Shown here piece after piece: positions 9,176-35,827 of a DNA stretch of 64,000 nucleotides (positions are counted from its first letter, which is position 1; each line of letters begins with the position of its first letter). The position numbers and the translations under genes are program-made. The DNA comes from Rebecca billardiae RCC1528. Lineage: Eukaryota > Protista > Haptophyta. The stretch is from NCBI GenBank assembly GCA_965240325.2, contig OZ251249.1, positions 124,001 through 188,000 of the forward strand. The letters run 5' to 3'. The notes under the pieces were generated by a model. The model saw only the letters and a program-made list of their open reading frames with translations, did no database searches and was not told where the DNA came from.

Positions 9176-10606
9176 TCAGCGCAGCCCACAGCGCCGCATC
9201 AGGGGCGGCAGCTGCACCACGCGCTGCGGCGTCGGCTGCTCTCCGCCATCGCTGTCCACGCCCAGGCCGAGCGCGCCCGAATGTATGCCGCATGCGTGCA
9301 CGCCGCCGTCCGCGGTGGCGTAGAGCGCGTGCCAATAACCGAGTGAGCAGTCGACGACGTGTGCGTGCGCGAGGCCCTGCACCCGCTCGGGCAGCGCGCG
9401 ATCCTCTCGGTCCCCCAGCCCCAGATGGCAACAGTGGTTGTGCCCAAACGCGTACACGCTGCCGTCCGCGCACACCACCGCGCTCGTGCGACAGCCCGCG
9501 CTGGCGCGCACGGCACGCATGCCCATCAATGCGTCGACGCGCGTGGGCACTAAGCGACGCGTCTCGTCACCGTGGCCGAGCGCGCCATGAGAACCGCCTC
9601 CGAAGGAGTGCACGCCGCCCGCTGCGTCCACCACCAGGCTGTGGTCTAAGCCCGCGCTCACGTGCACGGCGCGCACGCCCACGAGCGCCTCGATGCGCCG
9701 CGGCGTGCGCCGACCCTGCCCGCCGCCGTGGCCGAGCTGGCCGGAGATGGAGTCGCCACAGGAGTACACGGCGCCGCACGCCGAGAGCAGCAGCGTATGC
9801 TCGTTGCCCGCGGCCACGCCGCCCACGCGCACGCCGTCCAGCGCCTCGATGCGCGTCGGCTGCAGCCGCTTCTTTGTGTCGCCGTGGCCGAGCCGGCCAG
9901 AGCGGTTGTAGCCCCAGCTGTGCGCCGCGCCGGCAGCCGTGAGCGCGAGGCTATGATACAAGCCAGCAGCAACGCCGACGACGAGCTCCGCACCTAGCGC
10001 CGCCACCTGCACGAACGCCCGTCGCTCAGCCGTGTCGCCCACGCCCAGCTGGCCGTGGTCGTTGCTGCCGCAGCCGTACACGGCGCCGGCGTCGCTCAGC
10101 GCGAGCAAGTGCTCGCTGCCGGCAGCCACTGCACACACGCGCACCGCATCCAGCGAGCCCACGCGCGTCGGCGAGAGCACGATCGCCTCCCCGCTGAGGT
10201 CGCGATGGCCCAATCGCGCGCCGCACGTGTGCACGCATCCGGCGCCGTCGACAAAGGCGGAGAGGCGCATCTGAAAGGATCGGCTGGCAGCGGCAGCGTG
10301 CGCGTGCGCGCACGCAAGCTCGCACACGCGCTCGCGCCCAAGCAGCTCCTCCGCCCACGTGCGCGTGCCCGCCGGCAGGGTCGGCGGCAGCGCGGCCTCG
10401 TGCCCGCGCGCGCGCGCGCGCTCGCGCAGCGCGTGCTCGAGCGGCGCGCCGCGGAAGAGGCGCGCGGCGGCGTTGGCGGCGGCGAGATCGTGCGCGCCGT
10501 CGAGGTGGATAAGGATGCGCGCGACGAGCTCGCGCGGCAGGTCGGTCAGCCGCACGGCCGCCGCTGCCAAGCGCGCCTCGCTACGCGCGCGCGTCGTCGG
10601 TGCCAT
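9176..10606 (-). CDS. F-box-like + RCC1-repeat beta-propeller protein, copy 1
   Basis: LTDLPRELVARILIHL F-box-like motif and repeated VAAGxxH...GxVYxxGxNxxGQLG RCC1 blades. Intronless, 1431 bp. Confidence 0.9.
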   Translation of the reverse strand: MAPTTRARSEARLAAAAVRLTDLPRELVARILIHLDGAHDLAAANAAARLFRGAPLEHALRERARARGHEAALPPTLPAGTRTWAEELLGRERVCELACAHAHAAAASRSFQMRLSAFVDGAGCVHTCGARLGHRDLSGEAIVLSPTRVGSLDAVRVCAVAAGSEHLLALSDAGAVYGCGSNDHGQLGVGDTAERRAFVQVAALGAELVVGVAAGLYHSLALTAAGAAHSWGYNRSGRLGHGDTKKRLQPTRIEALDGVRVGGVAAGNEHTLLLSACGAVYSCGDSISGQLGHGGGQGRRTPRRIEALVGVRAVHVSAGLDHSLVVDAAGGVHSFGGGSHGALGHGDETRRLVPTRVDALMGMRAVRASAGCRTSAVVCADGSVYAFGHNHCCHLGLGDREDRALPERVQGLAHAHVVDCSLGYWHALYATADGGVHACGIHSGALGLGVDSDGGEQPTPQRVVQLPPLMRRCGLR

Positions 10607-11064
10607 CCCGCGCTCCAGCGCCACGTCGAGGACGACGGTTGGCCAAGCCAAAGGGCAGGAAGCGAATAAATAAAAGAACTGCTCTGATCATAGAATTGGT
10701 CCGGGGCGCCGCGCATCGGACTCAACAATTTTGAATCTTCCTAATCGGCACGCTGACTCGAGATGGCAGGAAGCGCGCGCCATGTACCTTGCGGATAGAC
10801 GTTGACCGAATATATGGCGTTCGCAGACGACGCGTCAGTGGGAAGGGCCATGGGCCGCGCCCGCATCAGCCCGATCGAGCCCCTGCCCCTGCGCCCCGCG
10901 GCCGCCGGCGCAGCCGCTGCGCGCTTGCAGCGCGGTGACGGGTGAGGCCGTCGTTTTGCGGCAGCACGGGGCGGTGCGGCACAGTGCCGCCTGCGCCAGC
11001 ACTCGCATCGGCACGCCACACGTGCGTGCATGCGCGAACAGCGCACTCACTGCTGGCCGCGCGC

Positions 11065-12495
11065 TCAGCGCAGCCCACAGCGCCGCAGCAGGGGCGGCAG
11101 CTGCACCACCTGCTGCGGCGTCTGCTGCTCTCTGCCATCGTAGCCCACGCCCAGGCCGAGCGCGCCCGAACGCCTGCCGCATGCGTGCACGCCACCGTCC
11201 GCGGTGACGTAGAGGGCGTGGGATGCGCCGAACGAGCAGTCGACCACGCGCGCATGCGCGAGGCCCTCCACCCGCTCGGGCAGCGTGCGATCCATTCGGT
11301 CCCCCAGCCCCAGCTGGCCACAGTCGTTGAGCCCAAATGCGTGCACGCTGCCGTCCGCGCACACAACTGCGCTGGTGTGATCGCCCGCGCTGGCGCGCAC
11401 GGCACGCATGCCGCCCAGTGCTTGAATGCGCGTGGGCACCGAACGACGCGCCACGTCACCGTGGCCGAGCGCGCCGCCGACACCGCTTCCGAAGGAGTGC
11501 ACGCCGCCCGCTGCGTCCACCACCAGGCTGTGGTTGAAGCCCGCGCTCACGTGCACGGCGCGCACGCCCGCGAGCGCCTCGATGCGCCGCGGCGTGCGCT
11601 GCCGCTGCCCGTCACCGTGGCCAAGGCGGCCGTCGTAGGCCTCCCCGCACGAGTACACTGCGCCGCACGCCGAGAGCAGCAGCGTGTAATAGCTGCCAGC
11701 GGCAACGCCGCCCACGCGCACGCCGTCCAGCGCCTCGATGCGCGTCGGCTCGAGCCGGTGCTTCGTGTCGCCGTGGCCGAGCTGGCCATAGTAGTTGTGG
11801 CCCCAGCTGTACGCTGCGCCGGCAGCCGTGAGCGCGAGGCTGTGGTACCAACAGGCAGCAACGCCGACGACGAGCTGCGCACCTAGCGCCGCCACCTGCA
11901 CGAACGCCCGTCGCGCAGCCGTGTCGCCCACGCCCAGCTGGCCAAAGACGTTGCCGCCGCACGCATACACGGCTCCAGCGTCGCTCAGCGCGAGCAGGTA
12001 CGTGCCACCGGCAGCAACTGCACGCACACGCACGGCCGCAAGCGAGTCCACGCGCGTCGGCACGAGCACGCGGGACTTCCAGCTCAGCTCGGGATGGCCC
12101 AGCGGCACGCCGCACGTGTGCACGCCGCCGGTGCTGTCGACAAAGGCGGAAAATCGCATCTCAATCGATCGGCCGGCAGCTGCAACGTGCGCGTGCGCGC
12201 ACGCAAGCTCGAGCACGCGCTCGTGCCCAAGCAGCTCCTCCGCCCACGTGCGCGTGCCCGCCGGCAGGGTCGGCGGCAGCGCGGCCTCGTGCCCGCGCGC
12301 GCGCGCGCGCTCGCGCAGCGCGTGCTCGAGCGGCGCGCCGCGGAAGAGGCGCGCGGCGGCGTTGGCGGCGGCGAGATCGTGCACGCCGTCGAGGTGAACG
12401 AGAATGCGCGCGACGAGCTCGGGCGGCAGGTCGGTCAGCCGCACGGCCGCCGTTGCCGAGCGCGCCTCCCCACGCGCGCGCGTCGTCGGTGCCAT
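11065..12495 (-). CDS. F-box-like + RCC1-repeat protein, copy 2
   Basis: Tandem paralog, 1431 bp, same motifs. Confidence 0.9.
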   Translation of the reverse strand: MAPTTRARGEARSATAAVRLTDLPPELVARILVHLDGVHDLAAANAAARLFRGAPLEHALRERARARGHEAALPPTLPAGTRTWAEELLGHERVLELACAHAHVAAAGRSIEMRFSAFVDSTGGVHTCGVPLGHPELSWKSRVLVPTRVDSLAAVRVRAVAAGGTYLLALSDAGAVYACGGNVFGQLGVGDTAARRAFVQVAALGAQLVVGVAACWYHSLALTAAGAAYSWGHNYYGQLGHGDTKHRLEPTRIEALDGVRVGGVAAGSYYTLLLSACGAVYSCGEAYDGRLGHGDGQRQRTPRRIEALAGVRAVHVSAGFNHSLVVDAAGGVHSFGSGVGGALGHGDVARRSVPTRIQALGGMRAVRASAGDHTSAVVCADGSVHAFGLNDCGQLGLGDRMDRTLPERVEGLAHARVVDCSFGASHALYVTADGGVHACGRRSGALGLGVGYDGREQQTPQQVVQLPPLLRRCGLR

Positions 12496-12930
12496 GTGGG
12501 AAGCCCGCGCCGCGGTGAGGACGGCGGTTGGCCGCTGCGCGGCCGAAGCCCGGCACCCGGGCTTGTCAGCGTGTCCGGTCCGGGGAGGCGCCATCAGTAT
12601 CATCTTTCCTAATCATCATTGTCAACGACTGACGAGTGACTGTGACTGACGACACTCATCAGTGACGATCTGAACCGTCACCGTGCCGAGACGGCGCTGA
12701 CTAGTCGTTGCATGTCCGAATGTATGGCGTTCGCAGACGACGCGTCAGTGGGAACGGCCATTGGCGGCGCGCGGCCCGCCTCAGCCCGCTGCCGCTGCCC
12801 GCTTGCAGCGCGGCGAGGCCGTCGGGTTCGGCAGCAGTGCAGCGCGGCACAGTGCCCTGCGCCAGCACTCGCAAGCACGGCGCACTCAGGCATGCCTGCG
12901 CGGCCAGCGCACCCACCACTGGCCGCGCGC

Positions 12931-14361
12931 TCAGCGCAGCCCACAGCGCCGCATCAGGGGCGGCAGCTGCACCACGCGCTGCGGCGTCTGCTGCAGTCCG
13001 CCATCGTCGTCCACGCCCAGGCCGAGCGCGCCCGAACGTTCACCGCACGCGCCCACGCCGCCGTCCGCGGTGGCGTAGAGGGCGTGGCGATAACCGCGTG
13101 AGCAGTCGACCACGCGCGCATGCGCGAGGCCCTCCACCCGCTCGGGTAGCGTGCGATCGACTCGGTCCCGCAGCCCCAGCTGGCCGTAGTAGTTGTCCCC
13201 AAACGTGTGCACGCTGCCGTCCGCGCACACCACCGCGCTGGTGCGACAGCCCGCGCTGGCGCGCACGGCACGCACGCCCAGCAGGGCGGCGATGCGCGTG
13301 GGCATCAAGCGACGCGCCTCGTCGCCGTGTCCGAGCGAGCCATACCCACCGCCTCCGAAGGAGTGCACGCCGCCCGCCGCGTCCACCACCAGGCTGTGCT
13401 CGAAGCCCGCGCTCACGTGCACGGCGCGCACGCCAGCGAGCGCCTCGATGCGCCGCGGCGTGCGCTGCCGCTGCTTGTCACCGTGGCCAAGGCAGCCGTA
13501 CTCGGCATCCCCGCACGAGTACACGGCGCCGCACGCCGAGAGCAGTAGCGTGTGCCCGCCGCCCGCCGCAACGCCGCCCACGCGCACGCCGTCCAGCGCC
13601 TTGATGCGCGTCGGCTGCAGCCGGTGCTTCGTGTCGCCGTGGCCGAGCTGGCCAAAGTAGTTGTGGCCCCAGCTGTACGCTGCGCCGGCAGCCGTGAGCG
13701 CGAGGCTGTGGTACCAACCGGCAGCAACGCCGACGACGAGCTGCGCACCTAGCGCCGCCACCTGCACGAACGCCCGTCGCTCAGCCGTGTCGCCCACGCC
13801 CAGCTGGCCAAAGACGTTGCCGCCGCACGCATACACGGCTCCGGCGTCGCTCAGCGCGAGCAGGTACGTGCCGCCGGCAGCAACTGCACGCACACGCACG
13901 GCCGCAAGCGAGTCCACGCGCGTCGGCACGAGCACGCGGGACTCCCAGCTCAGCTCGGGATGGCCCAGCGGCACGCCGCACGTGTGCACGCCGCCGGTGC
14001 TGTCGACAAAGGCGGAAAATAGCATCTCAATCGATCGGCCGGCAGCTGCAACGTGCGCGTGCGCGCACGCAAGCTCGAGCATGCGCTCGCGCCCAAGCAG
14101 CTCCTCCGCCCACGTGCGCGTGCCCGCCGGCAGGGTCGGCGGCAGCGCGGCCTCGTGCCCGCGCGCGCGCGCGCGCTCGCGCAGCGCGTGCTCGAGCGGC
14201 GCGCCGCGGAAGAGGCGCGCGGCGGCGTTCGCGGCGGCGAGATCGTGCGCGCCGTCGAGGTGGATGAGGATGCGCGCGACGAGATCGGGCGGCAGGTCGG
14301 TCAGCCGCACGGCCGCCGCTGCCAAGCGCGCCTCGCTACGCGCGCGCGTCGTCGGTGCCAT
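12931..14361 (-). CDS. F-box-like + RCC1-repeat protein, copy 3
   Basis: Tandem paralog, 1431 bp, same motifs. Confidence 0.9.
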   Translation of the reverse strand: MAPTTRARSEARLAAAAVRLTDLPPDLVARILIHLDGAHDLAAANAAARLFRGAPLEHALRERARARGHEAALPPTLPAGTRTWAEELLGRERMLELACAHAHVAAAGRSIEMLFSAFVDSTGGVHTCGVPLGHPELSWESRVLVPTRVDSLAAVRVRAVAAGGTYLLALSDAGAVYACGGNVFGQLGVGDTAERRAFVQVAALGAQLVVGVAAGWYHSLALTAAGAAYSWGHNYFGQLGHGDTKHRLQPTRIKALDGVRVGGVAAGGGHTLLLSACGAVYSCGDAEYGCLGHGDKQRQRTPRRIEALAGVRAVHVSAGFEHSLVVDAAGGVHSFGGGGYGSLGHGDEARRLMPTRIAALLGVRAVRASAGCRTSAVVCADGSVHTFGDNYYGQLGLRDRVDRTLPERVEGLAHARVVDCSRGYRHALYATADGGVGACGERSGALGLGVDDDGGLQQTPQRVVQLPPLMRRCGLR

Positions 14362-16268: not shown

Positions 16269-18564
16269 ATGGTCAATGGGATGCGGCGCAACGTGAGCGA
16301 GCCCGGCACGAGCGGCCGCGACCTCGCGCGCCTCGACCGCTACCCCGCCATCGAGCCGCGCGTCTCGGTCGACTCGAACGGCGCCGCCTCGGCCGGCGTC
16401 GGCGGCGCCGGCGGCGGCGGCGTGCTCTCGATGATGCAGTCGGCGTTCGGCGGCGGCGGCGGCGGCGGCGCGTTCGGGCACGCCAAGCCGAACGGCGTCT
16501 CGCGCATGAGCAGCGCCGGCGACAAGCTCGCCGCGCAGCACGGCGCCGACCCGCGCGACCGCGCGGTGCCGTCCGAGTACCTGCAGGACCTCGTGCGCAC
16601 GCCCGAGGCGCTGGAGAACGTGTCGGGGATCTGCCTGCTCGCGGCGCGGGGGAACCTGCCCGCGCTCAAGGCCAAGGCGGGCGCGCTCAAGGGCACCGCG
16701 CTCGCCGCCGCCAAGTCGCTCGACGGCCGCACGCCGCTCCACTTTGCCGCCGCGGCCAATCAGATCGCCGTGTGCGAGTGGCTGCTGGAGCAAGGCGTGC
16801 CCGTGAACGCGGTGGACGCGTTCGGGCTGACGCCGCTGGCGGAGGCGGTGCGCTGGTCCCACCGCGAGCTCGCGCGCTCGCTCCACGCCAAGGGCGCCTG
16901 CCTGCTCATCAACGGCATGCTCGTGCGCTACCACAACTTTGACGCGCAGGTGGGTGGGGGGACCGCGCGCGCGTGTGTGTGTGTACGTGCACGTGTGTGT
17001 GTGTCGGCGTGTGTGCGTGGAGGGAGAGAGGGAGCGCCCCGCGGTGGCGGCGGATGGTGCGGCGGAGTATAGGGCTGCCCCGCCGCGCCGCACACCGCAC
17101 ACCGGCTCCATGCCGCGCTCACACCCCCGCCCGCCCCCTCCCGCCCCTAACCCTAACCCTACCCCTAACCCTAACCCTAACCCAGGTGCCCCTGCTCAAC
17201 GCGTCGATGACGGACGAGGACTGGGAGATCGACGGGGAGGAGCTCAAGCCCGACGGCATGATCGGGCAGGGCTCGTTCGGGCTGATCTACCGCGCGGCGT
17301 GGCGGGGCACGCCCGTGGCGATCAAGCAGATCCACATCAAGCACCACACCGGTGCCGGCGCCGCCCCCGCCGAGCCCGGCGGCGCGCCGGCCGCGCCGCT
17401 GCCAGACGACCCGTCGGTTGAGGCGATCGTCTCGGAGCTGCGCGAGGAGCTGTGGCTGATGAGCCGGCTGCACCACCCGCACGTGCTGCAGTTCCTCGGC
17501 GCGGTGACCAAGCCGGGGCCGCACTCGCCCGCGATCGGTGCGCGCGCGCGCGCGCGCGCGGCGGGCTGGCTGGCGGCGCGCGGCGCCCGCCAGCCCTCGG
17601 CCCGGCGCGCGCGCGCGCGCTCACGCGCCCGCCCCGGCCCCGCCGCCCCGCTGCCCCGCCGCGCCCCCGCTGCCGCAGTGATGGAGCTCGCGACGCTCAC
17701 GCTCGCGCAGCGGTACAAGAACCCGCCGCCGCTCTCCTTCGCCGAGGCCATGTCCGCCGCCATCCACGTCGCGCGCGGCGTCGCGTACCTGCACGGCCAC
17801 AAGCCAAACCCGATCATCCACCGCGACCTCAAGCCGTCCAACGTGCTGCTCACGCACACGGGCGTGTGGAAGGTGTGCGACTTTGGGCTGTCGCGGCTGC
17901 TGCCGGGGAAGGGGCCGATGTCCACCGCGTACCGACTCACCGGCGAGACCGGCTCGTACGTCTACATGGCGCCCGAGGTCTTCAAACACGAGTCGTATTC
18001 TCTCAAGGTCGACCAGTACGCGTACGCAATGATTGTCTACCAGGCGTTTGAGAGAGAGCGGCCGTTTATTCCGCTCAGGCCGATGGAGGCGGCGCGCGCC
18101 GCGTCGATGGGCAGGCGGCCGACCAAGGTGCGTGCGCCCGACCGCCGTGCGCGCGCGCCGCGCCGCACGCCCCGCCGGCGCCGCGCTCACCCGCCCTCGC
18201 GTGCCGCGCCGCGCCGCGCGGTGTGTGCGGTGTGCGCGTGCGCGCGCGTGCGGTGCAGGTGGGGCGCATGCCGCCGGTCGTGCGGCAGCTGGTGCAGAGC
18301 TGCTGGGCGGACGATGTGCGCGCACGCGCACCCCGCCCGCGCCGTCGTCCCTCCTCCCCCCGCCTCCCCTCACGCCGCCCTCCCCCGCCTCCCCCGCCTC
18401 CCTCGCTGCAGCAACAACTGCGCCCCTCCTTTGAGGAGATCGTGGACGAGCTCTCCGAGTTTGCAGCGGCGCGCGGGCTGTCGGTGGGCGCGCAGTTCAC
18501 GCGCTACTCGGGGACCTCGCGCGCGCTGCACTGCTCGCCAGGGGGCGCGTGCGCGGTGAGCTGA
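16269..18564 (+). CDS. Ankyrin-repeat TKL/Raf-like (ILK/VIK-type) protein kinase, spliced (introns ~16950-17185, ~17538-17678 and two near 18128-18410)
   Basis: Ankyrin: DGRTPLHFAA, GLTPLAEA. Kinase: GQGSFG, VAIK, HRDLKPSN, DFG, APE. Start codon uncertain. Confidence 0.9.
17145..17183 (+). repeat. Intronic telomere-like (CCCTAA)n abutting the 3' splice site
   Basis: Seen directly; AG acceptor at 17184-17185. Confidence 0.9.
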
Positions 18565-19199: not shown

Positions 19200-20465
19200 T
19201 CCTACTGCCGCGGCGTCGACGTGCGCGACATAAGTCGCTCGACGCGCGTGGGCGTGCGCACTGCGCACCCCGTGCCCAGCCGGTCGAGCCGCGGCTCGCG
19301 CCAGACCGAGCGCGGCGGGCGCGTCGCCGCACGCGCGCACCGCGCCTCCCGCCGTCGCGTACAGCGCGCGCAGCCCGCCGCCGAGCGCGCAGCCCACCAC
19401 GCGCGCGCCTCGACGAGCGCGGCGACGCGCCGCGGCTCGGGCGCGACGCGCGCGCCATCCGCGCAGCCGAGCGCGCCGTGCGCAGCATTGCCGCCGCGCG
19501 CGCGCGCGCTGCCGTCTGCGCACAGGAGCGTGCTGCTGCGGTGGCCCGCGCTGGCGGCGACGGCGCGCACGGCCTCCAGGGCGTCGATGCGCCGCGGCGC
19601 GGGGTGGCCGGCGAGGTCGGCGCGCCCGAGGCAGAGGGCAGCTGCTGCCCCCGCGCCCACACGCGTACGCGGCGCCCGCCAGCGCCAGGCGGTGCCGCTC
19701 GCCCGCGCCCACGTGCGTCCCGCGCGCGCCGGCGAGGCCGCCGCGCGCGCGCGCGCGGGCGTGTGCCGCGCTCGGTCGTCGCCGTGGCCGAGGCGTCCCT
19801 CCCAGCCGGAGCCGCGCACGGGTACACGGCGCCGTGGCCGAGGCGTCCCTCCCAGCCGGAGCCGCACGGGTACACTACACGGCGCGCCGCACGGCGCGAG
19901 CAGCAGCGTGTGCCCCCAGCCCCCGCCGCCACGCCGCCCACGCGCACGCCGTCGAGCGCCTTGATGCGCGCGCGCGCCCAGCGCTCGCGCCAGTCGCCGT
20001 GGGCCGAGCCGTCCGGCCGGCTCGGCCCACGGCGACTGGCGCGTGGCCCAGCGGGGCCGGCACGCGCGCGCGCCCGGCCGCGTCCGCCAGCCCGGCCGCG
20101 TGCCGCTCGCCGCACGTGTGCAGCGCGCCGCAGGCCGCGCCCGCTCACGCGCTCAAGAAACGCGGCCGGCACGTGCGGCGGGACGCGGGCGCACGCGACG
20201 ACGGCGGCGTGCGCGCGCGCTCGCGCGAGCACGCGCTCGCGCGCGAGCAGCTCCTCCGTCCACGTCGCCGCCGCGCCGCGCGGCAGCGCGGCGGGCAGCG
20301 CGGCGGCGTGGCCCCGCGCGCGCGCGCGCGCGCTCGCGAAGCGCGCGCCCGACCGGTGAGCGCTGGCCTGGCGCGCCGCGGAAGAGGCGGGCGGCGTTGG
20401 CGGCGGCGATGTCGCGGACGTCGTCATGCGCTCGACTCGCTCCTGTCGATCGTCGCGGACGCCAT
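19200..20465 (-). pseudogene. Frameshifted, degenerate F-box/RCC1 family member
   Basis: Family-specific peptides scattered over several frames (AAANAARLFRGAP, TWTEELLARERVL, IKALDGVRVGGVAAG, GRLGHG, ALYATAGGAVRACG). Internal ~36-bp duplication at 19780/19830. Confidence 0.8.
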
Positions 20466-20660
20466 GACGTCGTGTGCGGGCGGACCCCCATCCGCGCCCG
20501 TCCGCCCGGACTCTCTCCCCACGCCCAGCGCGCGTCCCGGACAGCAGCGCCATTGTTGCGCTGAAGGTGCCGCGTGGCCTGGGCGCCCTCCCGAGTAGCG
20601 CGTCTGCTCGGTGCGTGTGACTGGAGCGAGGCAGCCGCAGCGCGCCACTCGCCGGCAGCC

Positions 20661-24492: not shown

Positions 24493-24756
24493 CGTGCTCC
24501 GGCGGGCGTGCGCCGAGCGGGGGCGTCGTGAAAGAGGCGTGGGCGGGCGCTCGCCGGGCCGCTTCGGAGTCAGAGTGGCATTTGTCGTCATCAATCAAAC
24601 GCGTCCCGGCGTCTTGAGCGAGATCTCTGAAACAAATCCGAGGCGGCGGGGTTGGTCTGAAAAAAGGTGAAAAGGGCGCGGCGCGCGCGCGCGCAACCGG
24701 AATCCTGGACCGCGCCGCGCCGCTTCGCCGCGCCAGCGCATCCGCCACTGCGATCG

Positions 24757-25538: not shown

Positions 25539-26783
25539 TTGGCGGCGGCATGGTCCTCGTCGTCTCGGCCCCCGCGCGGCTCTCGTCAGCCTCTGGCGGG
25601 GAGCCCGTGGGGGCCACGCGTCGCTGCCGCAGGCCGCTGTGATACCGACAAGGATGACGACGCGCATGCGCGCCCGCGCGGGCTCGAGTGCGCCTTCCCC
25701 TCCTGCAAGGACGGCGAGATGCTGGCACTCTCACACAAACTCTTGCTCATCTCGTCGCTCGTGCAGGCGGTGTTGGCGGATGCGGGCACGCGGCAGACGC
25801 GCGGTGCTGACGATGGCGACGATCACTACTACGACGACGACGTGCATGTGCGCCCGCGCGGGCTCGCGTGCGCCTTCCCCTCCTGCAAGGACGGCGAGAT
25901 GCTGGCACTCTCACACAAACTCTTGCTCATCTCGTCGCTCGTGCGGGCGGTGTTGGCGGATGCGGGCACGCGGCAGACGCGCGGTGCTGACGATGGCGAC
26001 GATCACTACTACGACGACGACGTGCATGCGCGCCCGCGCGGGCTCGCGTGCGCCTTCCCCTCCTGCAGGGACGGCGAGATGCTGGCACTCTCACACAAAC
26101 TCTTGCTCATCTCGTCGCTCGTGCGGGCGGTGTTGGCGGATGCGGGCACGCGGCAGACGCGCGGTGCTGACGATGGCGACGATCACTACTACGACGACGA
26201 CGTGCATGCGCGCCCGCGCGGGCTCGCGTGCGCCTTCCCCTCCTGCAGGGACGGCGAGATGCTGGCACTCTCACACAAACCCTTGCTCATCTCGTCGCTC
26301 GGGCGGGCGGTGTTGGCGGATGCGAGCGCGCCTGAGCCGGTGACACGCGTTGCTGACGACGACGCTTTCTACATTTCCCTGCAGCAGCCCGCCGGCGGGC
26401 CGGGCTGCGACGTCGACTACACCCTCATCCGCTTCATCGACCTGAGCGCGCTAGGCGGCGCGCTCACTCTCCAAGCCCCTCTTCTGCAGCTGCGCGCCGC
26501 TAGGCCGGTACGCGGCGACGTGTACTACGACCTCATCTTCATCCAGGCGCCCACGCGGGCGCCCGGGGGCGACAGCCGCGGCTGTCGCTTCCCGCAGCTG
26601 CACGCCGCTAGGTCGGCAGGCGGCGACATCGACTACGACCTCAGCCTCATCCAAGTGCTTCACCGGAAGGCGCTCGGCCGCGGCGGCATCTGCCGTCGCC
26701 GCCGCGTGCCCCAGGCCGAGGCGGTGCTCCATCCCGCCCCCGCTCCCGTAGGGGGGCAGGGCTGCGGGTGGCGCACTGCCTGA
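25539..26783 (+). CDS. Hypothetical ORF built from 60-aa tandem repeats with a BTB/POZ-like motif
   Basis: Open frame through ~3.7 x 180-bp repeats; CKDG..LSHKLLL.SS..V.AVL resembles the BTB/Skp1 N-terminus. Start codon unclear. Confidence 0.35.
   Translation: MAAAWSSSSRPPRGSRQPLAGSPWGPRVAAAGRCDTDKDDDAHARPRGLECAFPSCKDGEMLALSHKLLLISSLVQAVLADAGTRQTRGADDGDDHYYDDDVHVRPRGLACAFPSCKDGEMLALSHKLLLISSLVRAVLADAGTRQTRGADDGDDHYYDDDVHARPRGLACAFPSCRDGEMLALSHKLLLISSLVRAVLADAGTRQTRGADDGDDHYYDDDVHARPRGLACAFPSCRDGEMLALSHKPLLISSLGRAVLADASAPEPVTRVADDDAFYISLQQPAGGPGCDVDYTLIRFIDLSALGGALTLQAPLLQLRAARPVRGDVYYDLIFIQAPTRAPGGDSRGCRFPQLHAARSAGGDIDYDLSLIQVLHRKALGRGGICRRRRVPQAEAVLHPAPAPVGGQGCGWRTA
25655..26324 (+). repeat. 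~3.7 near-identical 180-bp tandem repeats
   Basis: Matching registers at 25681, 25861, 26041 and 26221. Confidence 0.97.
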
Positions 26784-26875
26784 CCTGGTCGGAAGGCGCG
26801 GACGCATTCTATATGTGTCTGCTGCACTCTGAGCCTGACGCTTGCCCGTTGCATACCACGTCGTTAAATATATAT

Positions 26876-29800
26876 CACAGCAACGACTTCTTTTTTAAAG
26901 CGGCCGTTAGCGTGTCCAGCGGCCAGACGATTAATTTTCGAAAAATTACTATGCGCTGCGCGCGCGCCCCTAGGGGGCGGCGCGCGCGCGCGGCTGGTCC
27001 CCCCTGCATGCCCGCACCGTCAGCTGCCTGATTGCCGCTACCCAGCCCCGCTACCGTCGCGCGCGACATCCGCGCCGTAAATCACCGTCACCGAGCGGTC
27101 CGGCGAGCGCGCCGCCATCAATTTGCTCCTGAGTGCCGAAAACTCCTTCTCCGGAAGCCCAGCCTCCTCGCGCAGGAGCTTGCGCGCCGTCATGCACTCC
27201 GCGATCAGGTCGATCGCGTCGGTCTCCGCCCTGCGCTGCCATTCGCGCTGCCGCTTGGCGTACTTCTTCAGCCAGAGCCGCCGCACCTTGTCGCCGAACT
27301 CCTCTGCCCACGTCGCAAGCGACACGCGGCGCACGAGCTGCGCGACCGTCGAGATGTGCGGCTCCGCCGTCGACTTCTTCCCCTCGGCGTACTCGCGGAC
27401 GAATGAGTCGAGTGACTTGCGCGCGTGCACGAGCGGCATCGCACGCTTGGTCACCTGCACGAAATGCCCCTGCACCTGCTCGTCCGCGAGCTGCACGAGG
27501 CGCCCCCGCCGCCTGAGGCGAGACGCCGTCTGCGCCCGCCTCCGTGACCGCCCAGACGTTGAAGCGGAGCGGTGGGACGTTGTGCGAGCCCTGGCCGGCG
27601 AGGCTGGCGAGGCTGACGTAAGCGCCGGTGCACGCCACGATGGCCTTCTGCTCCTCCGCGTAGTCGGCCGCCTCGGCGCCGCCGCCAAAACCGCCGCCGG
27701 CCGCGCTGCCGCCTGCCGAGGCAGTGCTGCCACCGAGGCCGCGCTGCTGCGCGCCGCCGCCGGCCGCGCCGCCGCCGGCCGCGCCGCCACCAGCCGCACC
27801 ACCACCCGCACTGTCAGCCGCGCGGCTGGCCGCGCCACATGCCGCGCCACCGGCCACGCGGACGCCAGCACCGGCTGTGCCGCTAGCCACGCCGCTGCCA
27901 CTGCCGGCCGCGCCGCCCACGCCGCCGCCCGCGCCCGCGCCCGCGCCCACGTTGCCACCCGCGCCCCCGGCCGCGCCCCCGGCCGCGCCGCCGGCCGCGC
28001 CACCGGCCGCGCGGACGCCAGCGCCAGCGGTGCCGCCAGCCACGCAGCTGCCGCTGCTGCTGCCACCAGTGCTGCTGCTGCCGCCCGCACCGGCCGCGCC
28101 GCCGCCGGCCGCGCCACCGCCGGCCGCGCCGCCGCCGGCCGCGCCGCCGCCGGCCGCGCGATCGCGAGCGCTGTCAGCCGCGCCGCTGTCCGCGCCGCCG
28201 GCCGCACCTCCGGCCGCGCCTCCAGCCGCGCGGACGCCAACGCCAGCTGTGCCGCCAGCCACGCCACTGCAGCTGCCGCCCGCGCCGCCCGCGCCGCCGC
28301 CAGCACCCGCGCCCGCGTTGCCAGCCGCGCCGCCGGCCGCGTCCGGCCGCGTCGCCGGGCGCACCGCCGCCTGGCGCGCAGTTGTCGGGCGTGCCGCCGT
28401 CGGGCGCGCCGCCACCGGGCCCGCCATCGCCCGCGCTGTCAGCCGCGCCGCCGGCCGCGCCGCCGGCCGCGCCACCGGCCGCGCGGACGCCAACGCCGGC
28501 TGTGTCGCCAGTCACGCCGCTGTCGCTGCAGCTGCCGCCGCTGCTGCCGGCCGCGCCGGCCGCGCGCGGCCGCGCCGCCGGCCGCGCCGCCGCCGGCAGT
28601 GCCGCCGCCGGCCGCGCCACCGCCCGCGCTGTCAGCCGCGCCGCTGGCCGCGCCGCCGGCCGCGCCACCGGCCGCACGGACGCCAGCGCCGACTGTGCCG
28701 CCAGCCACGCCGCTGCCGCTGCCGCTCGCGCCGGCCGCGCCGCCGCCCGTGCCCGCGGACGCGCCCGCGTTGCCAGCCGCGCCGCCCGCCGCGCCGCCGG
28801 CCGCGCCGCCGACCGCGCAACCGGCCGCGCGGACTCCAGCGCCGGCGGCACCGCCAGCTACGCCGCTACCGCTGCCGCTGCCGCCGCTGCCGCCGGCCGC
28901 GCCGCCGGCCGCGTCGCCGGCCGCGCCGCCTGCAGCGCCGCCAGCCGCGCCGCCCTGCCGCGCTGGCCACGTGCAGCGGCGGCAGCTGGCGGCGCCGGTC
29001 GCGGTGGGAGCCGGCCGCTCCGGATCACGTCATTGATCCCGTCGGCGTCCGCACTCCATAGCTCGGGCATGTCCGAGTCCGGCCGCTCCGAGATGGCGAT
29101 CGCCTCCGACGACGCGAGCGCAACACCCTCATAGTTGCGCACGATGGCGATCGTGGCCGCGCGCGAGTGCGCTGCGTTTGGCCCGTGTCCGCCGAGAGGA
29201 GGAGGACATGCGGCTGCCCGCGCGGGCGCGCGGACTTGCCGTAGTGCTCCAAGCGATCCAGCACGGCGCCCACGGCCTGCGCCCACGGCCGCGCCGCCGA
29301 CTCGCTGCCGATCATCATCACGCCCGCGCCCGCGTGCTCGCGATTGCGCAGCGCGCTCTCACGTGAGCCAGCCACCGGCGGCGGGATCGGGTGGCGCATG
29401 CCCAGGTTGAGCCACGTCGAGAACTCTCGGGCTGGCGCGAGCCCACGATGCTCAGTGTGCGGTCCTTCTCGCGCGCCTAGTGCACGACGCCCTCGTCGTC
29501 GAGCGAGGTGAAGGCATGCAAGACGAGCGCGTCTCACGAGAAGAGCCGCAGCTTGGCTACACGCAGCAGGTTGTTCTTCTTCCGCTGGGCCTTGATGGCG
29601 ACGAGGCTGTTGACGCTGCGCTTGACCTCCGCCAGGTAGTTCTCGTTCGGCATGATCGAGTGGTCCACCTCGCTCGCGGCCTCGCGCGCGCGCAGCTTGA
29701 GCATCTCGTGCGGCTGAGCGCCGCGGCCATGCGCAGCCATGCAGATGCGGCAGAGACGTGGCGCCCGATGCGTTAGGCACCTTTGCGATGCAGCTTGGGC

Positions 29801-30413: not shown

Positions 30414-30530
30414 ATAGATATATAGATATATATAGATACATATATAGATATATATATCATTCGATTATAATTATATATACTAATATGCATATATGCATAT
30501 ATATACATACATGTATATATATTATATATT
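30414..30530. repeat. AT-rich compound microsatellite
   Basis: Seen directly in the sequence. Confidence 0.9.
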
Positions 30531-30732
30531 TTCATCAGCGGGCCGGGCCGCGCCGAGGCCCGGCGGCGTCGTGAAGACTGAAGTTAACTGCTACGGGCGG
30601 CAGTGCAGGCCTGCAGGGCAGTGCGGCACAGTGCCCTGTGCCAGCACTCGCACGCTCGCCGCACCCGGGCATGTATGCGTGACCAGCGCAACCACCACTG
30701 GCCGCTCGCTCAGTGCAGCCCACAGCGCCGCA

Positions 30733-32145
30733 TCACCGGGGCGGCAGCTGCACCACACGCTGCGGCGTCTGTTGCACTCCGCCATCGTAGCCCACGCCCA
30801 GGCCAAGCGCGCTCGAACGTATGCCGCACGCGTGCACGCCGCCGTTGGCGGTGACGTAGAGGGCGTGCGGTGCGCCGAGTGAGCAGCCAACCACGCTCGC
30901 ATGCGCGAGGCCCGCCACCCGCCCGGGCAGCGTGCGATCCATTCGGTCCCCCAGCCCCAGCAGGCCGCTGTAGTTGTGCCCAAACGTGTGCACGCTGCCG
31001 TCCGCGCACACCACCGCGCTCGTGCACTTGCCCGCGCTGGCGCGCACGGCACGCACGCCCATCAGGGCGGCGATGCGCGTGGGCATCAGGCGACACGCCT
31101 TGTCACCGTGGCCGAGCTGGCCATACCCACCGCCTCCGAAGGAGTGCACGCCGCCCGCCGCGTCCACCACCAGGCTGTGGTCGTAGCCTGCGCTCACGCG
31201 CACGGCGCGCACGCCCACGAGCGCCTCGATGCGCCGCGGCGTGCGCTGCTGCTGCTCGTCGCCGTGGCCAAGGCAGCCGTCAGCAGCGTACCCGGACGAA
31301 TACACGGCGCCACACGCCGAGAGCAGCAGCGTGTGCCAGCGGCCCGCCGCCACGCCGCCCACGCGCACGCCGTCCAGCGCCTCGATGCGCGTCGGCTCCC
31401 ACCGCTCCTTCCTGTCGCCGTGGCCGAGCTGGCCATAGTAGTTGGAGCCCCAGCTGTACGCCGCGCCGGCAGCCGTGAGCGCGAAGCTGTGGTACAATCC
31501 GGCAGCAATGCCGACGACGAGCTCCGCGCCCAGCGCCGCCACCTGCACGAACGCCAGTCGCTCAGCCTTGTCGCCCACGCCCAGCTGGCCGTAGTCGTTG
31601 CTGCCGCATGCGTACACGGCGCCGGCGTCGCTCAGCGCGAGCAGGTGCGTGCCGCCGGCAGCCACTGATCGCACGCGCACCGCTTCCAGCGAGCCCACGC
31701 GCCTCGGCACGAGCACGCGGGACTCCCTGCTAAGCTCGGGATGGCCCAGCGGCACGCCGCACGTGTGCACGCCGCCGCCGCCGTCGACAAAGGCGGAAAA
31801 GCTCATCTGGAACGATGGGCTGGCAGCGGCAACGTGTGCGTGCGCGCGCGCAAGCTCGAGCACGCGCTCACGCCCAAGCAGCTCTTCCGCCCACGTACGC
31901 GTGCCCGCCGGCAGGGTCGGCGGCAGCGCGGCCTCGTGCCCGCGCGAGCGCGAACGCTCGCGCAGCGCGTGCTCGAGCGGCGCGCCGCGGAAGAGGCGAG
32001 CGGAGGCGTTGGCTGCGGCGAGGTCACGCGTGCCGCCGAGGTGGATGAGAATGCGCGCGACGAGCTCGGGCGGCAGGCCGGTCAGCCGCACGGCCACCGC
32101 TGCCGAGCGCGCCTCCCCACGCGCGCGCGTCGTCGGTGCCGCCAT
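30733..32145 (-). CDS. F-box-like + RCC1-repeat protein, copy 4 (C-terminal tail shortened by a 2-bp insertion)
   Basis: Same architecture; ends QLPPR* instead of QLPPLMRRCGLR*. Confidence 0.88.
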   Translation of the reverse strand: MAAPTTRARGEARSAAVAVRLTGLPPELVARILIHLGGTRDLAAANASARLFRGAPLEHALRERSRSRGHEAALPPTLPAGTRTWAEELLGRERVLELARAHAHVAAASPSFQMSFSAFVDGGGGVHTCGVPLGHPELSRESRVLVPRRVGSLEAVRVRSVAAGGTHLLALSDAGAVYACGSNDYGQLGVGDKAERLAFVQVAALGAELVVGIAAGLYHSFALTAAGAAYSWGSNYYGQLGHGDRKERWEPTRIEALDGVRVGGVAAGRWHTLLLSACGAVYSSGYAADGCLGHGDEQQQRTPRRIEALVGVRAVRVSAGYDHSLVVDAAGGVHSFGGGGYGQLGHGDKACRLMPTRIAALMGVRAVRASAGKCTSAVVCADGSVHTFGHNYSGLLGLGDRMDRTLPGRVAGLAHASVVGCSLGAPHALYVTANGGVHACGIRSSALGLGVGYDGGVQQTPQRVVQLPPR

Positions 32146-32601
32146 ATGTTCGTCGCCCGCGCCACGGTCGAGGACGACGGTTGGCCGGGGCGAAAAAGCA
32201 CATTGAATAAGCCGCGGAATGATGCTGAATTTCGTGACGCGATGAATCGATGATACGACGACACTCGTCAGCATCAGGCGCGATCTGAACCGTGCCACGA
32301 CGCCGCTGACTCGCTACCCGCCAGCCTGACGCGCGCACTGTACACAGCATGCTGCTAATCAGGCGTGGTCCGAAGATGGCGATCGCTGAAGACGCATCAT
32401 TGGGAACGGCCACGGGCCGCGCCCGCATGAGCCCGATCGAGCCCCTGCCCCAGCGGGCCGAGCTGCCCGCTTCGACGGCAGCGCGGAGAGGTCGTCGTTT
32501 TAGGCGGCAGGGCAGTGCGGCACAGTGCCATGCGCCAGCACTCACACGCACGCCGCCGGTGCATGCCCGCCCGACCAGCGCGCTCAGCACTGGCCACGCG
32601 C

Positions 32602-34035
32602 TCAGCGCAGCCCGTATCGCCGCATCAGGGGCGGCAGCTGCACCACGCGCTGCGGCGCCTGCTGCGCTCCGCCATCGTAGCCCACGCCCAGGCCAAGCGC
32701 GCCCGAATGCATGCCGCATGCGTGCACGCCGCCGTCCGCGGTGGCGTAGAGGGCGTGGCTGTCCCCGAGTGAGCAGTCGACCACGCGCGCATGCGCGAGG
32801 CCCTCCACCCGCTTGGGCAGCGTGCGATCCATTCGGCCCCCCAGCCCCAGCAGGCCGGTGCGGTTGTCCCCAAACGTGTGCACGCTGCCGTCTGCGCACA
32901 CCACCGCGCTCGTGCGATAGCCCGCGCTGGCGCGCACGGCACGCATGCCGCCCAGTGCTTGAATGCGCGTGGGCACCAAGCGACGCGTCTCGCCACCGTG
33001 GCCGAGCGCGCCGCCGATACCGCCTCCGAAGGAGTGCACGCCGCCCGCCGCGTCCACCACCAGGCTGTGGTTGAAGCCCGCGCTCACGTGCACGGCGCGC
33101 ACACCCGCGAGCGCCTCGATCCGCAGCGGAACGTGCCGCTGCTGATCGTCGCCGTGGCCAAGTTGGCCGGCAACGGCCTCCCCGCACGAATACACGGCGC
33201 CGCACGCCGAGAGCAGCAGCGTGTGCCCCCAGCCCGCCCCCGCACCGCCCACGCGCACGCCGTCCAGTGCCTCGATGCGCGTCGGCTCCAGCCGGTGCTT
33301 CGTGTCGCCGTGGCCGAGCTGGCCAGAGTAGTTGTGGCCCCAGCTGTACGCTGCGCCGGCAGCCGTGAGCGCGAGGCTGTGGTGCCAACCAGCAGCGACG
33401 CCGACGACGAGCTCCGCACCCAGCGCCACCACCTGCACGAACGCCAGTCGCGCAGCCTTGTCGCCCACGCCCAGCTGGCCGTAGTCGCTGCTGCCGCACG
33501 CGTACACGGCGCCGGCGTCGCTCAGCGCGAGCAGGTGCGTGGCCCCAGCAGCCACTGACTGCACGCGCGTCACGTGCAGTGAGCTCACGCGCGTCGGCAC
33601 GCGCACTGTCGAATCCCAGCTGAGCTCGGGATGGCCCAGCGGTGCGCCGCACGTGTGCACGCCGCCGGCGCCGTCGACAAAGGCGGAGAATCTCGTGAGG
33701 TAGGATTGATTGGCAGCGGCAGCGTGTGCGTGCGCGCGCGTAAGCTCCAACACGCGCTCACGTCCAAATAGCTCCTCCGCCCACGTACGCGTGCCCGCCG
33801 GCAGGGTCGGCGGCAGCGCGGCCTCGTGCCCGCGCGCGCGCGCGCGCTCGCGCAGCGCGTGCTCGAGCGGCGCGCCGCGGAAGAGGCGAGCGGCGGCGTT
33901 GGCGGCGGCGAGGTCGCGCGTGCCGTCGAGGTGGGTGAGAATGCGCGCGACCAGCTCGGGCGGCAGGTCGGTCAGCCTCACTGCCGCCGCTGCCGAGCGC
34001 GCCTCCCCACGCGCGCGCGTCGTCGGTGCCGCCAT
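32602..34035 (-). CDS. F-box-like + RCC1-repeat protein, copy 5
   Basis: Same architecture, 1434 bp. Confidence 0.9.
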   Translation of the reverse strand: MAAPTTRARGEARSAAAAVRLTDLPPELVARILTHLDGTRDLAAANAAARLFRGAPLEHALRERARARGHEAALPPTLPAGTRTWAEELFGRERVLELTRAHAHAAAANQSYLTRFSAFVDGAGGVHTCGAPLGHPELSWDSTVRVPTRVSSLHVTRVQSVAAGATHLLALSDAGAVYACGSSDYGQLGVGDKAARLAFVQVVALGAELVVGVAAGWHHSLALTAAGAAYSWGHNYSGQLGHGDTKHRLEPTRIEALDGVRVGGAGAGWGHTLLLSACGAVYSCGEAVAGQLGHGDDQQRHVPLRIEALAGVRAVHVSAGFNHSLVVDAAGGVHSFGGGIGGALGHGGETRRLVPTRIQALGGMRAVRASAGYRTSAVVCADGSVHTFGDNRTGLLGLGGRMDRTLPKRVEGLAHARVVDCSLGDSHALYATADGGVHACGMHSGALGLGVGYDGGAQQAPQRVVQLPPLMRRYGLR

Positions 34036-34411
34036 GCTCGTTGCCCGCGCCACGGTCGAGGACGACGGTTGGCCGGGGCGAAAAATCACATTGAAGCCGC
34101 GGAATGCTGACGATGAATTTCGTGACGCGATGAATCGATGATACGACGACACTCGTCGGCATCAGGCGCGATCTGAACCGTGCCACGATGCCGCTGACTC
34201 GCTACCCGCCAGCCTGACGCGCGCACTGTACACAGCATGCTGCTAATCAGGCGTGGTCCGAAGATGGCGATCGCTCCCGCTTCGACGGCAGCGCGGAGAG
34301 GTCGTCGTTTTAGGTGGCAGGGCAGTGCGGCACAGTGCCCTGCGCCAGCACTCGCACGCACGCCGCCGGCGCATGCCTGCCCGACCAGCGCGCTAAGCCC
34401 TGGTCGTGCGC

Positions 34412-35827
34412 TCAGCGCAGCCCATAGCGCCGCATCAGGGGCGGCAGCTGCACCACACGCTGCGGCGTCTGCTGCACTCCGCCATCGTAGCCCACGCCCA
34501 GGCCGAGCGCGGCCGAACGCAGGCCGCACGCGTACACGCCGGCATCCGCCGTCAAATAGAGGGCGTGGATATAGCCGAGTGAGCAGTCGACCACGTGCGC
34601 ATGCGCGAGCCCCCCCATCCGCCCGGGCAGCGTGTGATCCATTCGGTCCCCCGGCCCCAGCAGGCCGGTGCGGTTGTCCCCAAACGTGTGCACGCTGCCG
34701 TCCGCGCACACCACCGCGCTCGTCCAATAGCCCGCGCTGGCGCGCACGGCACGCATGCCCATCAATGCGTCGATGCGCTTGGGCACCGGGCGAGTAGCCT
34801 CATCACCGTGGCCGAGCGCGCCATGAGAACCGCGACCGAAGGAGTGCACGCCGCCCGCGCTGTAGTTGTAGCCCGCGCTCACGTGCACGGCGCGCACGCC
34901 CGCGAGCGCCTCGATGCGCCGCGGCGTGCGCTGCCGCTGCCCGTCACCGTGGCCAAGGCAGCCGTCGTAGGCCTCCCCGCACGAGTACACTGCGCCGCAC
35001 GCCGAGAGCAGCAGCGTGTGATAGCAGCCCGCGGCCACGCCACCCACGCGCACGCCGTCCAGCGCCTCAATGCGCGTTGGCTGCAGCCGGTCCTTTGTGA
35101 CGCCGTGGCCGAGCATGCCAAAGCCGCCGCGGCCCCAGCTGTACACAGCGCCGGCAGCCGTGAGCGCGAGGCTGTGGTACCAACCGACAGCAACGCCGAC
35201 GACGAGCTCCGCGCCCAGCGCCGCCACCTGCACGAACGCCCGTCGCTCAGCCGTGTCGCCCACGCCCAGCTGGCCGTACTCGTTGCTGCCGCACGCGTAC
35301 ACGGCGCCCGCCTCGCTCAGCGCGAGCAGGTGCTCGCTGCCGGCAGCCACCGCGCACACACGCACAGCCGCTAGGGAGCCGATGCGCCTCGGCAGGAGCA
35401 CGCGGGACTCCCTGCTGAGCTCGGGATGGCCCCATCGCGCGCCGCACGTGTGCACGCCGCCGGTGCTGTCGACAAAGGCGGAAAATCTCATCTCAATCGA
35501 TCGGCCGGCAGCTGCAACGTGCGCGTGCGCGCACGCGAGCTCGAACACGCGCTCGCGTCCAAATAGCTCCTCAGCCCACGTGCGCGTGCCCGCCGGCAGG
35601 GTCGGCGGCAGCGCGGCCTCGTGCCCGCGCGCACGCGAACGCTCGCGCAGCGCGTGCTCGAGCGGCGCGCCGCGGAAGAGGCGAGCGGCGGCGTTGGCGG
35701 CGGCGAGGTCACGCGCGCCGTTGAGGTGGACCAAAATGCGCGCGACGAGATCGGGCGGCAGGTCGGTCAGCCGCACGGCCGCCGTTGCCGAGCGCGCCTT
35801 GCCACGCGCGCGCGTCGTCGGTGCCAT
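34412..35827 (-). CDS. F-box-like + RCC1-repeat protein, copy 6 (in-frame ~5-codon deletion in one blade)
   Basis: Same architecture; SAGYNYSAGGV lacks LVVDA. Confidence 0.88.
   Translation of the reverse strand: MAPTTRARGKARSATAAVRLTDLPPDLVARILVHLNGARDLAAANAAARLFRGAPLEHALRERSRARGHEAALPPTLPAGTRTWAEELFGRERVFELACAHAHVAAAGRSIEMRFSAFVDSTGGVHTCGARWGHPELSRESRVLLPRRIGSLAAVRVCAVAAGSEHLLALSEAGAVYACGSNEYGQLGVGDTAERRAFVQVAALGAELVVGVAVGWYHSLALTAAGAVYSWGRGGFGMLGHGVTKDRLQPTRIEALDGVRVGGVAAGCYHTLLLSACGAVYSCGEAYDGCLGHGDGQRQRTPRRIEALAGVRAVHVSAGYNYSAGGVHSFGRGSHGALGHGDEATRPVPKRIDALMGMRAVRASAGYWTSAVVCADGSVHTFGDNRTGLLGPGDRMDHTLPGRMGGLAHAHVVDCSLGYIHALYLTADAGVYACGLRSAALGLGVGYDGGVQQTPQRVVQLPPLMRRYGLR

Follow-up and report, generated by a model that had tools for sequence, protein, structure and literature searches.

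We analysed a window of 64,000 nt from the haptophyte Rebecca billardiae RCC1528 (GenBank assembly GCA_965240325.2, contig OZ251249.1, positions 124,001 to 188,000 of the forward strand), a stretch of eukaryotic DNA with a GC content of about 70%. The minus strand between positions 9176 (stop codon of copy A) and 35827 (ATG of copy F) carries six complete open reading frames (ORFs) of 470-477 codons, all of them intronless, without internal stops and with the conserved start MAPTTRAR. The six intronless paralogs reported in an earlier sequence-based note on this DNA, hereafter the original prediction, were therefore recovered as intact genes. The encoded proteins probably form a lineage-specific multigene family in which a divergent F-box is followed by a helical linker and a seven-bladed RCC1-like propeller. 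Amino-acid change among the copies is concentrated at recurring positions of the propeller blades, and we hold with moderate confidence that the family is a repertoire of substrate adaptors of the SCF (Skp1-Cullin-F-box) type, in which a constant chassis with a diversified binding face is maintained by selection and gene conversion.

Gene copies and domain architecture

The copies are arranged as two head-to-tail triplets about 16 kb apart, with units of about 1.8-1.9 kb, all on the minus strand. The first triplet contains copy A (9176-10606, 476 aa; F-box-like segment, linker and seven-blade RCC1 propeller, with Pfam RCC1 E 4e-62 and F-box-like 12.2 bits), copy B (11065-12495, 476 aa), which was chosen for modelling, and copy C (12931-14361, 476 aa). 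The second contains copy D (30733-32145, 470 aa), whose C-terminus is 7 residues shorter than that of the other copies, copy E (32602-34035, 477 aa), which has the top F-box-like score among the six (16 bits, E 0.011), and copy F (34412-35827, 471 aa), which has a 5-residue deletion; the differences in D and F were read from the ORFs and their alignment. Pairwise identity among the six is 79-89% for protein and 86-93% for DNA. A 3' flank of about 120 nt is common to all six units and is probably a 3' untranslated region (9053-9175, minus strand, in the case of copy A; mean Jukes-Cantor distance 0.26 in the alignment). A 5' leader of about 50 nt is common to five of the six (A-E), and the remaining spacer sequence is diverged and rich in indels.

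A decayed seventh family member, a pseudogene on the minus strand at about 19245-20500, brings the locus to six intact and one decayed copy within 27 kb. It was recovered as tblastn pieces in frames -1, -2 and -3, with linker and blade motifs of 34-53% identity scattered across the three reading frames, a GC content of 0.769 and translations rich in Ala, Arg, Gly and Pro. Sitting between the two arrays, it gives a picture of unselected decay for an F-box/RCC1 gene in this genome, and it could serve as a conversion donor. Some of the six copies may be functionally impaired despite their intact ORFs, because copies A and B each have a conserved Gly replaced by Cys and copy F has lost LVVDA in frame, i.e. 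most of a conserved beta-strand at alignment codons of about 324-328. Copy F in particular may be impaired in function.

All six copies matched Pfam PF00415 with 203-219 bits (cut-off 21.7) and PF25390 with 228-245 bits (cut-off 150). The E-values were about 1e-61 to 1e-66 for RCC1 and 1e-61 to 1e-72 for RCC1 and RLD (RCC1-like domain) together. The AlphaFold2 model of copy B, built on a 55-sequence alignment, had a mean pLDDT (predicted local distance difference test) of 94.2 and a pTM (predicted template modelling score) of 0.91. It comprises short helices at residues 25-33, 38-47 and 54-66, a long linker helix at 84-101 and 28 strands, four to each of the seven blades. The Foldseek neighbours of the propeller were UVR8 (template modelling score TMt 0.91, 30% identity), the RLDs of HERC2 (0.85) and HERC1, RPGR, and RCC1 itself (0.76-0.78), so that the RCC1 propeller proposed originally was borne out by both Pfam and the model.

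UVR8 shares the seven-blade RCC1 fold and is the nearest solved structure. However, UVR8 has no F-box and the algal proteins have no Trp triad, and the two are not orthologous. We rejected a UVR8 photoreceptor because the positions equivalent to the triad are those of a hypervariable loop (loop 2, see below); only blade 2 has W-[YH]-H, not in every copy, and the conserved Arg is absent. The Ran exchange factor RCC1 was rejected as well, since the family is multi-copy and variable and has an N-terminal F-box-like module; RCC1 itself was a weaker match (E 1e-22).

The F-box-like segment has a counterpart in all six copies and spans residues 20-66 in copy B (LTDLPPELVARIL...ARLFRG...; 12298-12438, minus strand), where it was recognised by profile and fold match while lying below the PF12937 threshold. 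Scores for PF12937 (F-box-like) were 12-16 bits against a gathering cut-off of 24.3, with no match reported for copies C and D. We then considered the N-terminal module as a family, using a 114-residue alignment of the six window copies and 14 outside homologues. Sixteen of these 20 sequences matched PF12937 and seven matched PF00646, with a best E of 9.5e-9. The profile of the module gave 11 matches in the PDB at E up to 10, all of them F-box proteins, including FBXO22 (the best, E 1.1e-3), FBXO31, FBXW7, cyclin F, GID2 and Legionella AnkB. The pattern LPxEL...I/L...L...DL...RLF is intact and under purifying selection. The module modelled by itself (pLDDT 82) had helices at residues 25-33, 37-47 and 54-66. 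When this model was compared with VIA-align, the top 19 rows were all Skp1-bound F-box proteins (Z 3.8-6.6, values below 8 being common for small helical domains), and the alignments to Fbw7 and beta-TrCP ran through the linker helix over 73-98 residues (Z 4-5.7). Since the single copies score below the threshold and the evidence comes from the profile and the fold, we call the N-terminus a divergent F-box by family-level homology and a putative rather than a proven Skp1 binder. The F-box of the original prediction was thus retained through the family profile and a modest fold match, and not through the Pfam score of any copy.

Searching 1.84 billion proteins with the module profile yielded 660 cluster representatives, 281 of them at E 1e-10 or better and many of them 470-550 aa long. 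All ten representatives that were looked up were environmental sequences. Because of this number and this origin, we conclude that the module family is real, widespread and undescribed. The window proteins themselves are absent from the protein database, the closest outside protein having 51% identity. That relative (Logan ERR14847148, 153-1703) is a lone and apparently intronless gene on a 5.5-kb contig, with the same F-box-like/linker/RCC1 layout and no neighbouring paralog. Pattern scans with the six-copy alignment gave no confirmed relative in viral contigs or metagenome contigs.

Variable positions within the propeller blades

The blade repeat is 52 residues long, and diversity among the six proteins is concentrated in two of its segments. 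Mean amino-acid diversity was 0.70, 0.62 and 0.77 at blade positions 8, 10 and 11 (loop 1, G-x-N-x-x-G) and 0.77 and 0.70 at blade positions 43-44 (loop 2, the G-x-x-H turn). A patch at blade positions 19-23 (patch 3) and position 29 were moderately variable, with values of 0.2-0.5 at positions 18-24 and 29, and about three quarters of the other blade positions had a diversity of 0.20 or below. The observed profile was matched by none of 20000 within-blade position shuffles. As examples, loop 1 in blade 3 of copy B reads HNYY (11788-11799, minus strand, blade positions 8-11) and loop 2 in the same blade reads SY (11689-11694, minus strand). Across the six copies, loop 1 reads YNRS/HNYY/HNYF/SNYY/HNYS/RGGF in blade 3 and DSIS/EAYD/DAEY/YAAD/EAVA/EAYD in blade 4. 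The two variable residues of the G-x-x-H turn are NE/SY/GG/RW/WG/CY in blade 3, CR/DH/CR/KC/YR/YW in blade 5 and YW/AS/YR/AP/DS/YI in blade 6.

Every loop string quoted in the original prediction is present as written. The claim that two positions vary in every blade needs to be narrowed: the two positions do recur, but blades 3-7 are strongly hypervariable and blades 1-2 only weakly so, and patch 3 and position 29 vary too. The scaffold, which had been described as near-invariant, is only conserved, with a non-synonymous distance (dN) of 0.087 and a ratio of non-synonymous to synonymous rates (omega) of about 0.2-0.25. As for composition, Tyr makes up 14.1% of loop residues against 1.8% in the rest of the propeller and Trp 3.8% against 0.5%, and Ser and Asn are also enriched. 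Among the residues proposed earlier (Tyr, Trp, Phe and Arg) the enrichment of Tyr and Trp was confirmed, while Arg is not enriched (7.3% against 8.3%).

In order to describe where these segments lie, we used the strand topology of the model and an alignment to UVR8. Strands 1 and 2 of a blade are joined by a tight turn, which is loop 2, and the long stretch joining strands 3 and 4 starts with loop 1 and ends with patch 3. In an antiparallel meander, the strand 1-2 and strand 3-4 connections share one side of the sheet. The phmmer alignment places loop 2 on the W-R of the UVR8 motif GWRHT, position 3 of loop 1 on D96 and patch 3 on D107. Both of these aspartates are salt-bridged to R286 across the monomers of the UVR8 dimer (PMC5091643). 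Because of this topology and of the alignment to dimer-contact residues, the three variable segments appear to correspond to residues of a single protein-protein interaction face, which supports the earlier claim of one interaction face for loops 1 and 2. The variation is not wholly on that face, since position 29, in the connection from strand 4 to the next blade, is on the opposite side.

Exchange between copies and substitution rates

The nearest relative of each copy shifts along the gene. Copy B is near-identical to C over coding-sequence nt 226-750 (2-4 differences per 150 nt) and close to F over nt 751-975; around nt 976-1200 B is close to E and C is close to D, and A resembles C at the 5' end. 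Of the pairs formed by 126 informative sites, 54% failed the four-gamete test. A test similar to the pairwise homoplasy index gave a neighbouring-site incompatibility of 0.435 compared to 0.537 for shuffled sites (0 of 2000 shuffles). The Hudson-Kaplan minimum number of recombination events (Rm) was at least 52, a value inflated by recurrent mutation at hot sites. Loop variants are shared by differing pairs of copies, namely GSH by A and F, GGY by C and D, and EAYD by B and F. Since identical loop variants recur in different pairs and blades, exchange both homogenises the scaffold and recombines sets of loops. Even the most recently shared tracts have about 2.6 non-synonymous differences for every synonymous one.

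All selection analyses were performed on the window's own six genes (15 pairs), with a loop class set beforehand by blade position and consisting of 27 codons of loop 1 and 12 codons of loop 2. The Nei-Gojobori means were dN 0.52 and dS (synonymous distance) 0.33 for the loops, compared to dN 0.087 and dS 0.17 for the propeller scaffold; dS for the whole gene was 0.17. Loop dN is thus well above scaffold dN. A tree-free per-column count of minimum changes gave ratios of 1.59 for the loops and 0.53 for the scaffold. The non-coding yardsticks were 0.26 for the 3' flank and 0.24 for the 5' leader. In a codon bootstrap, the proportion of non-synonymous differences (pN) in the loops was 2.58 times the proportion of synonymous differences (pS) in the rest of the gene (95% confidence interval 2.04-3.24), 1.73 times the 3' flank (1.33-2.29) and 1.42 times the loops' own pS (1.02-2.21); in the last case the ratio did not exceed 1 in 1.8% of replicates. 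Amino-acid change in the loops clearly exceeds all gene-wide and flanking neutral yardsticks.

Since recombination is rampant, we did not accept single-tree site models as sufficient and therefore added partitioned trees, the tree-free counts above, a multi-nucleotide model and a class test with a free synonymous rate. The site models were of the Goldman-Yang type with F3x4 frequencies and branch lengths from M0, and they share a single synonymous rate across sites. On a single tree, M2a against M1a gave a likelihood-ratio test statistic (LRT) of 133 (p 1e-29). On five segment trees the same comparison gave LRT 70 (p 6e-16; top class 5% of sites, omega about 9), M8 against M7 gave LRT 72 (p 2e-16; top class 6.5% of sites, omega about 7) and M8 against M8a, with the same top class, LRT 65 (p 4e-16). 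When double and triple changes were allowed, M2a against M1a on the five trees still gave LRT 16 (p 3e-4; top class 5%, omega about 4). Sites of high posterior numbered 9-10 among the 39 loop codons and 3-5 among the 324 other propeller codons (Fisher p about 1e-7). The class test indicated purifying selection elsewhere, with omega 0.21-0.24 for the scaffold and 0.29-0.34 for the N-terminus.

The base composition of the loops is not that of neutral sequence at this locus. GC at the first and second codon positions is 0.49 and 0.47 in the loops compared to 0.80 and 0.56 in the scaffold, and the loop codons use a narrow alphabet rich in Tyr, Trp, Ser, Asn and Asp. Hypervariable codons commonly end in T or A (TCT/TAT/TTT, CAT, TGT, ATA), where GC at third positions of the gene is 0.87. 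In loop columns such as 237, 340-341, 373, 393 and 442-443, positions 1-2 change while a third-base T is often kept (TCT/TAT/TTT; TGT/GAT/TAT; CAT/TAT), which looks like repeated single replacements. The frameshifted seventh copy has risen to about 77% GC, so the neutral drift of this genome is toward higher GC. Plain neutrality of the loops is unlikely, because they are AT-rich at positions 1-2 and rich in Tyr and Trp while neutral drift raises GC. GC-biased gene conversion, a recognised source of false positives in selection tests, was rejected since the AT enrichment of the loops is in the opposite direction.

Candidate function and relation to known systems

The layout would be that of an SCF adaptor resembling Fbw7 or beta-TrCP, with an RCC1 propeller replacing WD40, and homology supports such a role. 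We suggest that purifying selection and frequent gene conversion or unequal exchange hold the F-box, the linker and the beta-strand scaffold alike, while the residues of one face in each blade would undergo repeated amino-acid substitution followed by blade-by-blade reshuffling between copies. The outcome would be propellers that share a chassis and have distinct binding surfaces rich in Tyr, Trp, Ser and Asn. Most likely, the proteins serve to recognise protein ligands that are numerous and different or that change rapidly, and these ligands would then be ubiquitinated. The binding of Skp1, the ubiquitination, the kind of ligand and a possible role in defence are here inferred.

Several observations weigh against a selected adaptor repertoire. 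The sample consists of six sequences only, and recombination is so frequent that tree-based site models are approximate. When the loop class was given its own synonymous rate, that rate (alpha) was raised to 1.5-2.3, and the loop ratio of non-synonymous to synonymous rate (beta/alpha) was 1.30 with one tree (p 0.32), 1.49 with five (p 0.15) and 1.65 with nine (p 0.07), so that with these six genes loop change is not proven to exceed the loops' own silent rate. Diversity at 4-fold sites is likewise 0.18 adjacent to the loops compared to 0.09-0.13 elsewhere. Because the loops' own synonymous rate is raised, part of their excess could be older divergence where homogenisation is resisted. The conserved-glycine changes in A and B and the strand deletion in F indicate some relaxed constraint. 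With regard to the F-box, no window copy attains the Pfam gathering score, Foldseek with the N-terminal model gave no significant match (E 1.8 or worse), and VIA-align Z values below 8 may reflect generic helical packing and are not decisive for helical domains. The diversifying selection of the original prediction is supported in that M8 improves on M7 and the site models favour omega above 1 for about 5% of codons, concentrated in the loops it named, while the ratio to the loops' own synonymous rate in the class test is above 1 without being significant for six genes.

Neutral drift in loops that are merely unconstrained and are the sole parts escaping homogenisation by gene conversion is a doubtful reading. 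It would agree with the non-significant test against the loops' own silent rate, with the raised synonymous rate in and near the loops, with pervasive conversion and with the possibly damaging changes in some copies. Yet it would not lead to loop codons that are AT-rich at positions 1-2 and rich in Tyr, Trp, Asn and Ser in a genome where drift has carried the decayed copy to 77% GC. Every point estimate of omega for the loops is above 1, including the bootstrap value relative to their own pS, and the comparison of M8 with M8a rejects omega = 1 for the top class. The six ORFs are also intact, while the nearby unselected copy is frameshifted.

Somewhat less probable is a mainly mutational origin of the diversity, either by templated micro-conversion with numerous divergent paralogs or pseudogenes as donors (shuffling of blade cassettes) or by clustered multi-nucleotide mutation, instead of selected point substitutions. 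Shuffling redistributes variants and creates none, although the loop variants common to differing copy pairs, the Rm of at least 52 and a decayed copy lying between the arrays are all in keeping with it. Allowing multi-nucleotide changes lowers the LRT from 70 to 16, but the signal persists (p 3e-4), and changes at positions 1-2 with the third base kept fit repeated single substitutions. Such a mechanism is compatible with selection keeping its products and is a complement to an adaptor repertoire more than an alternative.

We give a similarly low probability to the proteins not being SCF adaptors, in which case the N-terminal helices would serve, for example, oligomerisation or localisation, and the propeller would bind alone or act as an exchange factor or scaffold. 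The sub-threshold scores of all six copies and the weak Foldseek and VIA-align results would be expected under this reading, whereas the restriction of the PDB matches of the family profile to F-box proteins, the F-box-like matches in 16 of the 20 aligned sequences and the intact motif pattern under purifying selection would not. The order of F-box, linker helix and propeller also matches Fbw7 and beta-TrCP over the length of the VIA-align alignments. The mammalian protein FBXO24 likewise has both an F-box and an RCC1 domain, and it functions as part of an SCF complex, where it binds SKP1/CUL1 (PMC10932545). FBXO24 is comparable to the algal family in these two domains; it is single-copy and conserved. 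Fbw7 and beta-TrCP share the domain order, and in them as in the algal proteins the substrate is expected on the top face of the propeller. They differ in belonging to the WD40 and not the RCC1 superfamily and in being single conserved genes, not hypervariable arrays.

In plant S-locus F-box systems, F-box paralogs stand in tandem and differ in their diversified recognition domains. A repertoire for self/non-self or mating recognition of that kind, in place of defence against viruses or transposons, is very improbable here: the array structure is an S-locus hallmark too, and nothing pointed specifically to viruses, no relative having been confirmed in the scans of viral contigs, but Pfam searches of the neighbouring ORFs found no linked candidate ligand gene between the arrays, where only a kinase, a ZIP transporter and repeats lie.

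The Pfam matches among the neighbouring ORFs were limited to this kinase, the ZIP transporter and a tyrosine recombinase. The last is the C-terminal domain (PF00589, 23.9 bits, slightly under the cut-off) of a 1286-aa ORF adjoining the first array (4719-8579, minus strand), which has the appearance of a DIRS/Crypton-like element. At 17145-17183, inside or adjoining the protein-kinase ORF 16973-18559, there is an interstitial repeat of telomere type with 6.5 copies of CCCTAA. Downstream of the last gene of each triplet (A and D) there are dinucleotide microsatellites, (TG)18 at 8904-8941 and (AT)59 at 30414-30529, which are conspicuous within DNA of 70% GC and may mark array boundaries. A 180-bp tandem repeat (25656-26331, 3.8 copies, 97% identity) is contained in ORF 25539-26783, which had no Pfam match. 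A low-complexity repeat of about 1.2 kb based on a 12-nt unit (27750-28960, 78% GC) leaves several frames open on both strands, with translations rich in Ala, Gly and Pro.

Returning to the adaptor repertoire, the closest precedents are the F-box families of nematodes and plants. According to the account in PMC8665587 of Thomas 2006 (Genome Res 16:1017), the F-box of these families is under purifying selection and the C-terminal substrate-binding domain is positively selected, and the families were proposed to recognise foreign proteins. Lineage-specific tandem expansion is common to both, and the algal genes may also share the conserved F-box joined to a positively selected substrate-binding domain; in the alga the expansion comprises the six intact copies and the decayed one, the nearest outside protein being at 51%. 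Compared with the families in that account, the algal recognition domain is an RCC1 propeller instead of FTH, FBA or kelch, the variable sites are at the same two positions of each blade, and the host is GC-rich. A literature search returned no paper on F-box, RCC1 and selection in algae, its RCC1 matches being mostly Roscoff culture-collection strain numbers. The family is new in its combination of an RCC1 propeller as variable domain, strict blade periodicity and an algal host.

A more general likeness is to arrays of nucleotide-binding leucine-rich-repeat (NLR/LRR) genes, the variable lymphocyte receptors (VLRs) of lampreys and S-locus F-box arrays. In all of these a constant scaffold carries exposed hypervariable positions that recur with each repeat, with a paratope-like composition rich in Tyr, Trp and Ser and reshuffling by gene conversion. 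The algal diversity is confined to germline paralogs, and nothing points to somatic assembly. Further differences are the fold and the output (predicted to be ubiquitination), and the resemblance is one of mechanism, not of family membership. The antibody- or LRR-like immune role with viral or transposon targets in the original prediction is plausible but speculative. In its fuller form, i.e. a germline intracellular recognition repertoire in which one propeller face is a combinatorial paratope of about 13 short loops, diversified by selection and recombined between copies blade by blade, and which sends foreign (giant-virus or transposon) proteins to the proteasome, we regard it as rather unlikely.

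Marine algae are under heavy viral pressure, and to our knowledge their immune-like recognition systems are almost unknown. If our interpretation is true, a large ubiquitin-ligase adaptor family with an antibody-like loop composition on a constant propeller would be a concrete and testable candidate for recognition in algae. The idea that F-box families act as pathogen sensors, put forward for nematodes and plants, would then reach a third lineage of eukaryotes and another recognition fold, one new to it. If the immune reading is also true, the family would be a ubiquitin-coupled innate receptor system on a fold without such a known role. The regular geometry of the blades makes the family a natural experiment on the way in which a variable binding surface is built from repeats, and it could be a model for engineering binders based on RCC1 propellers.

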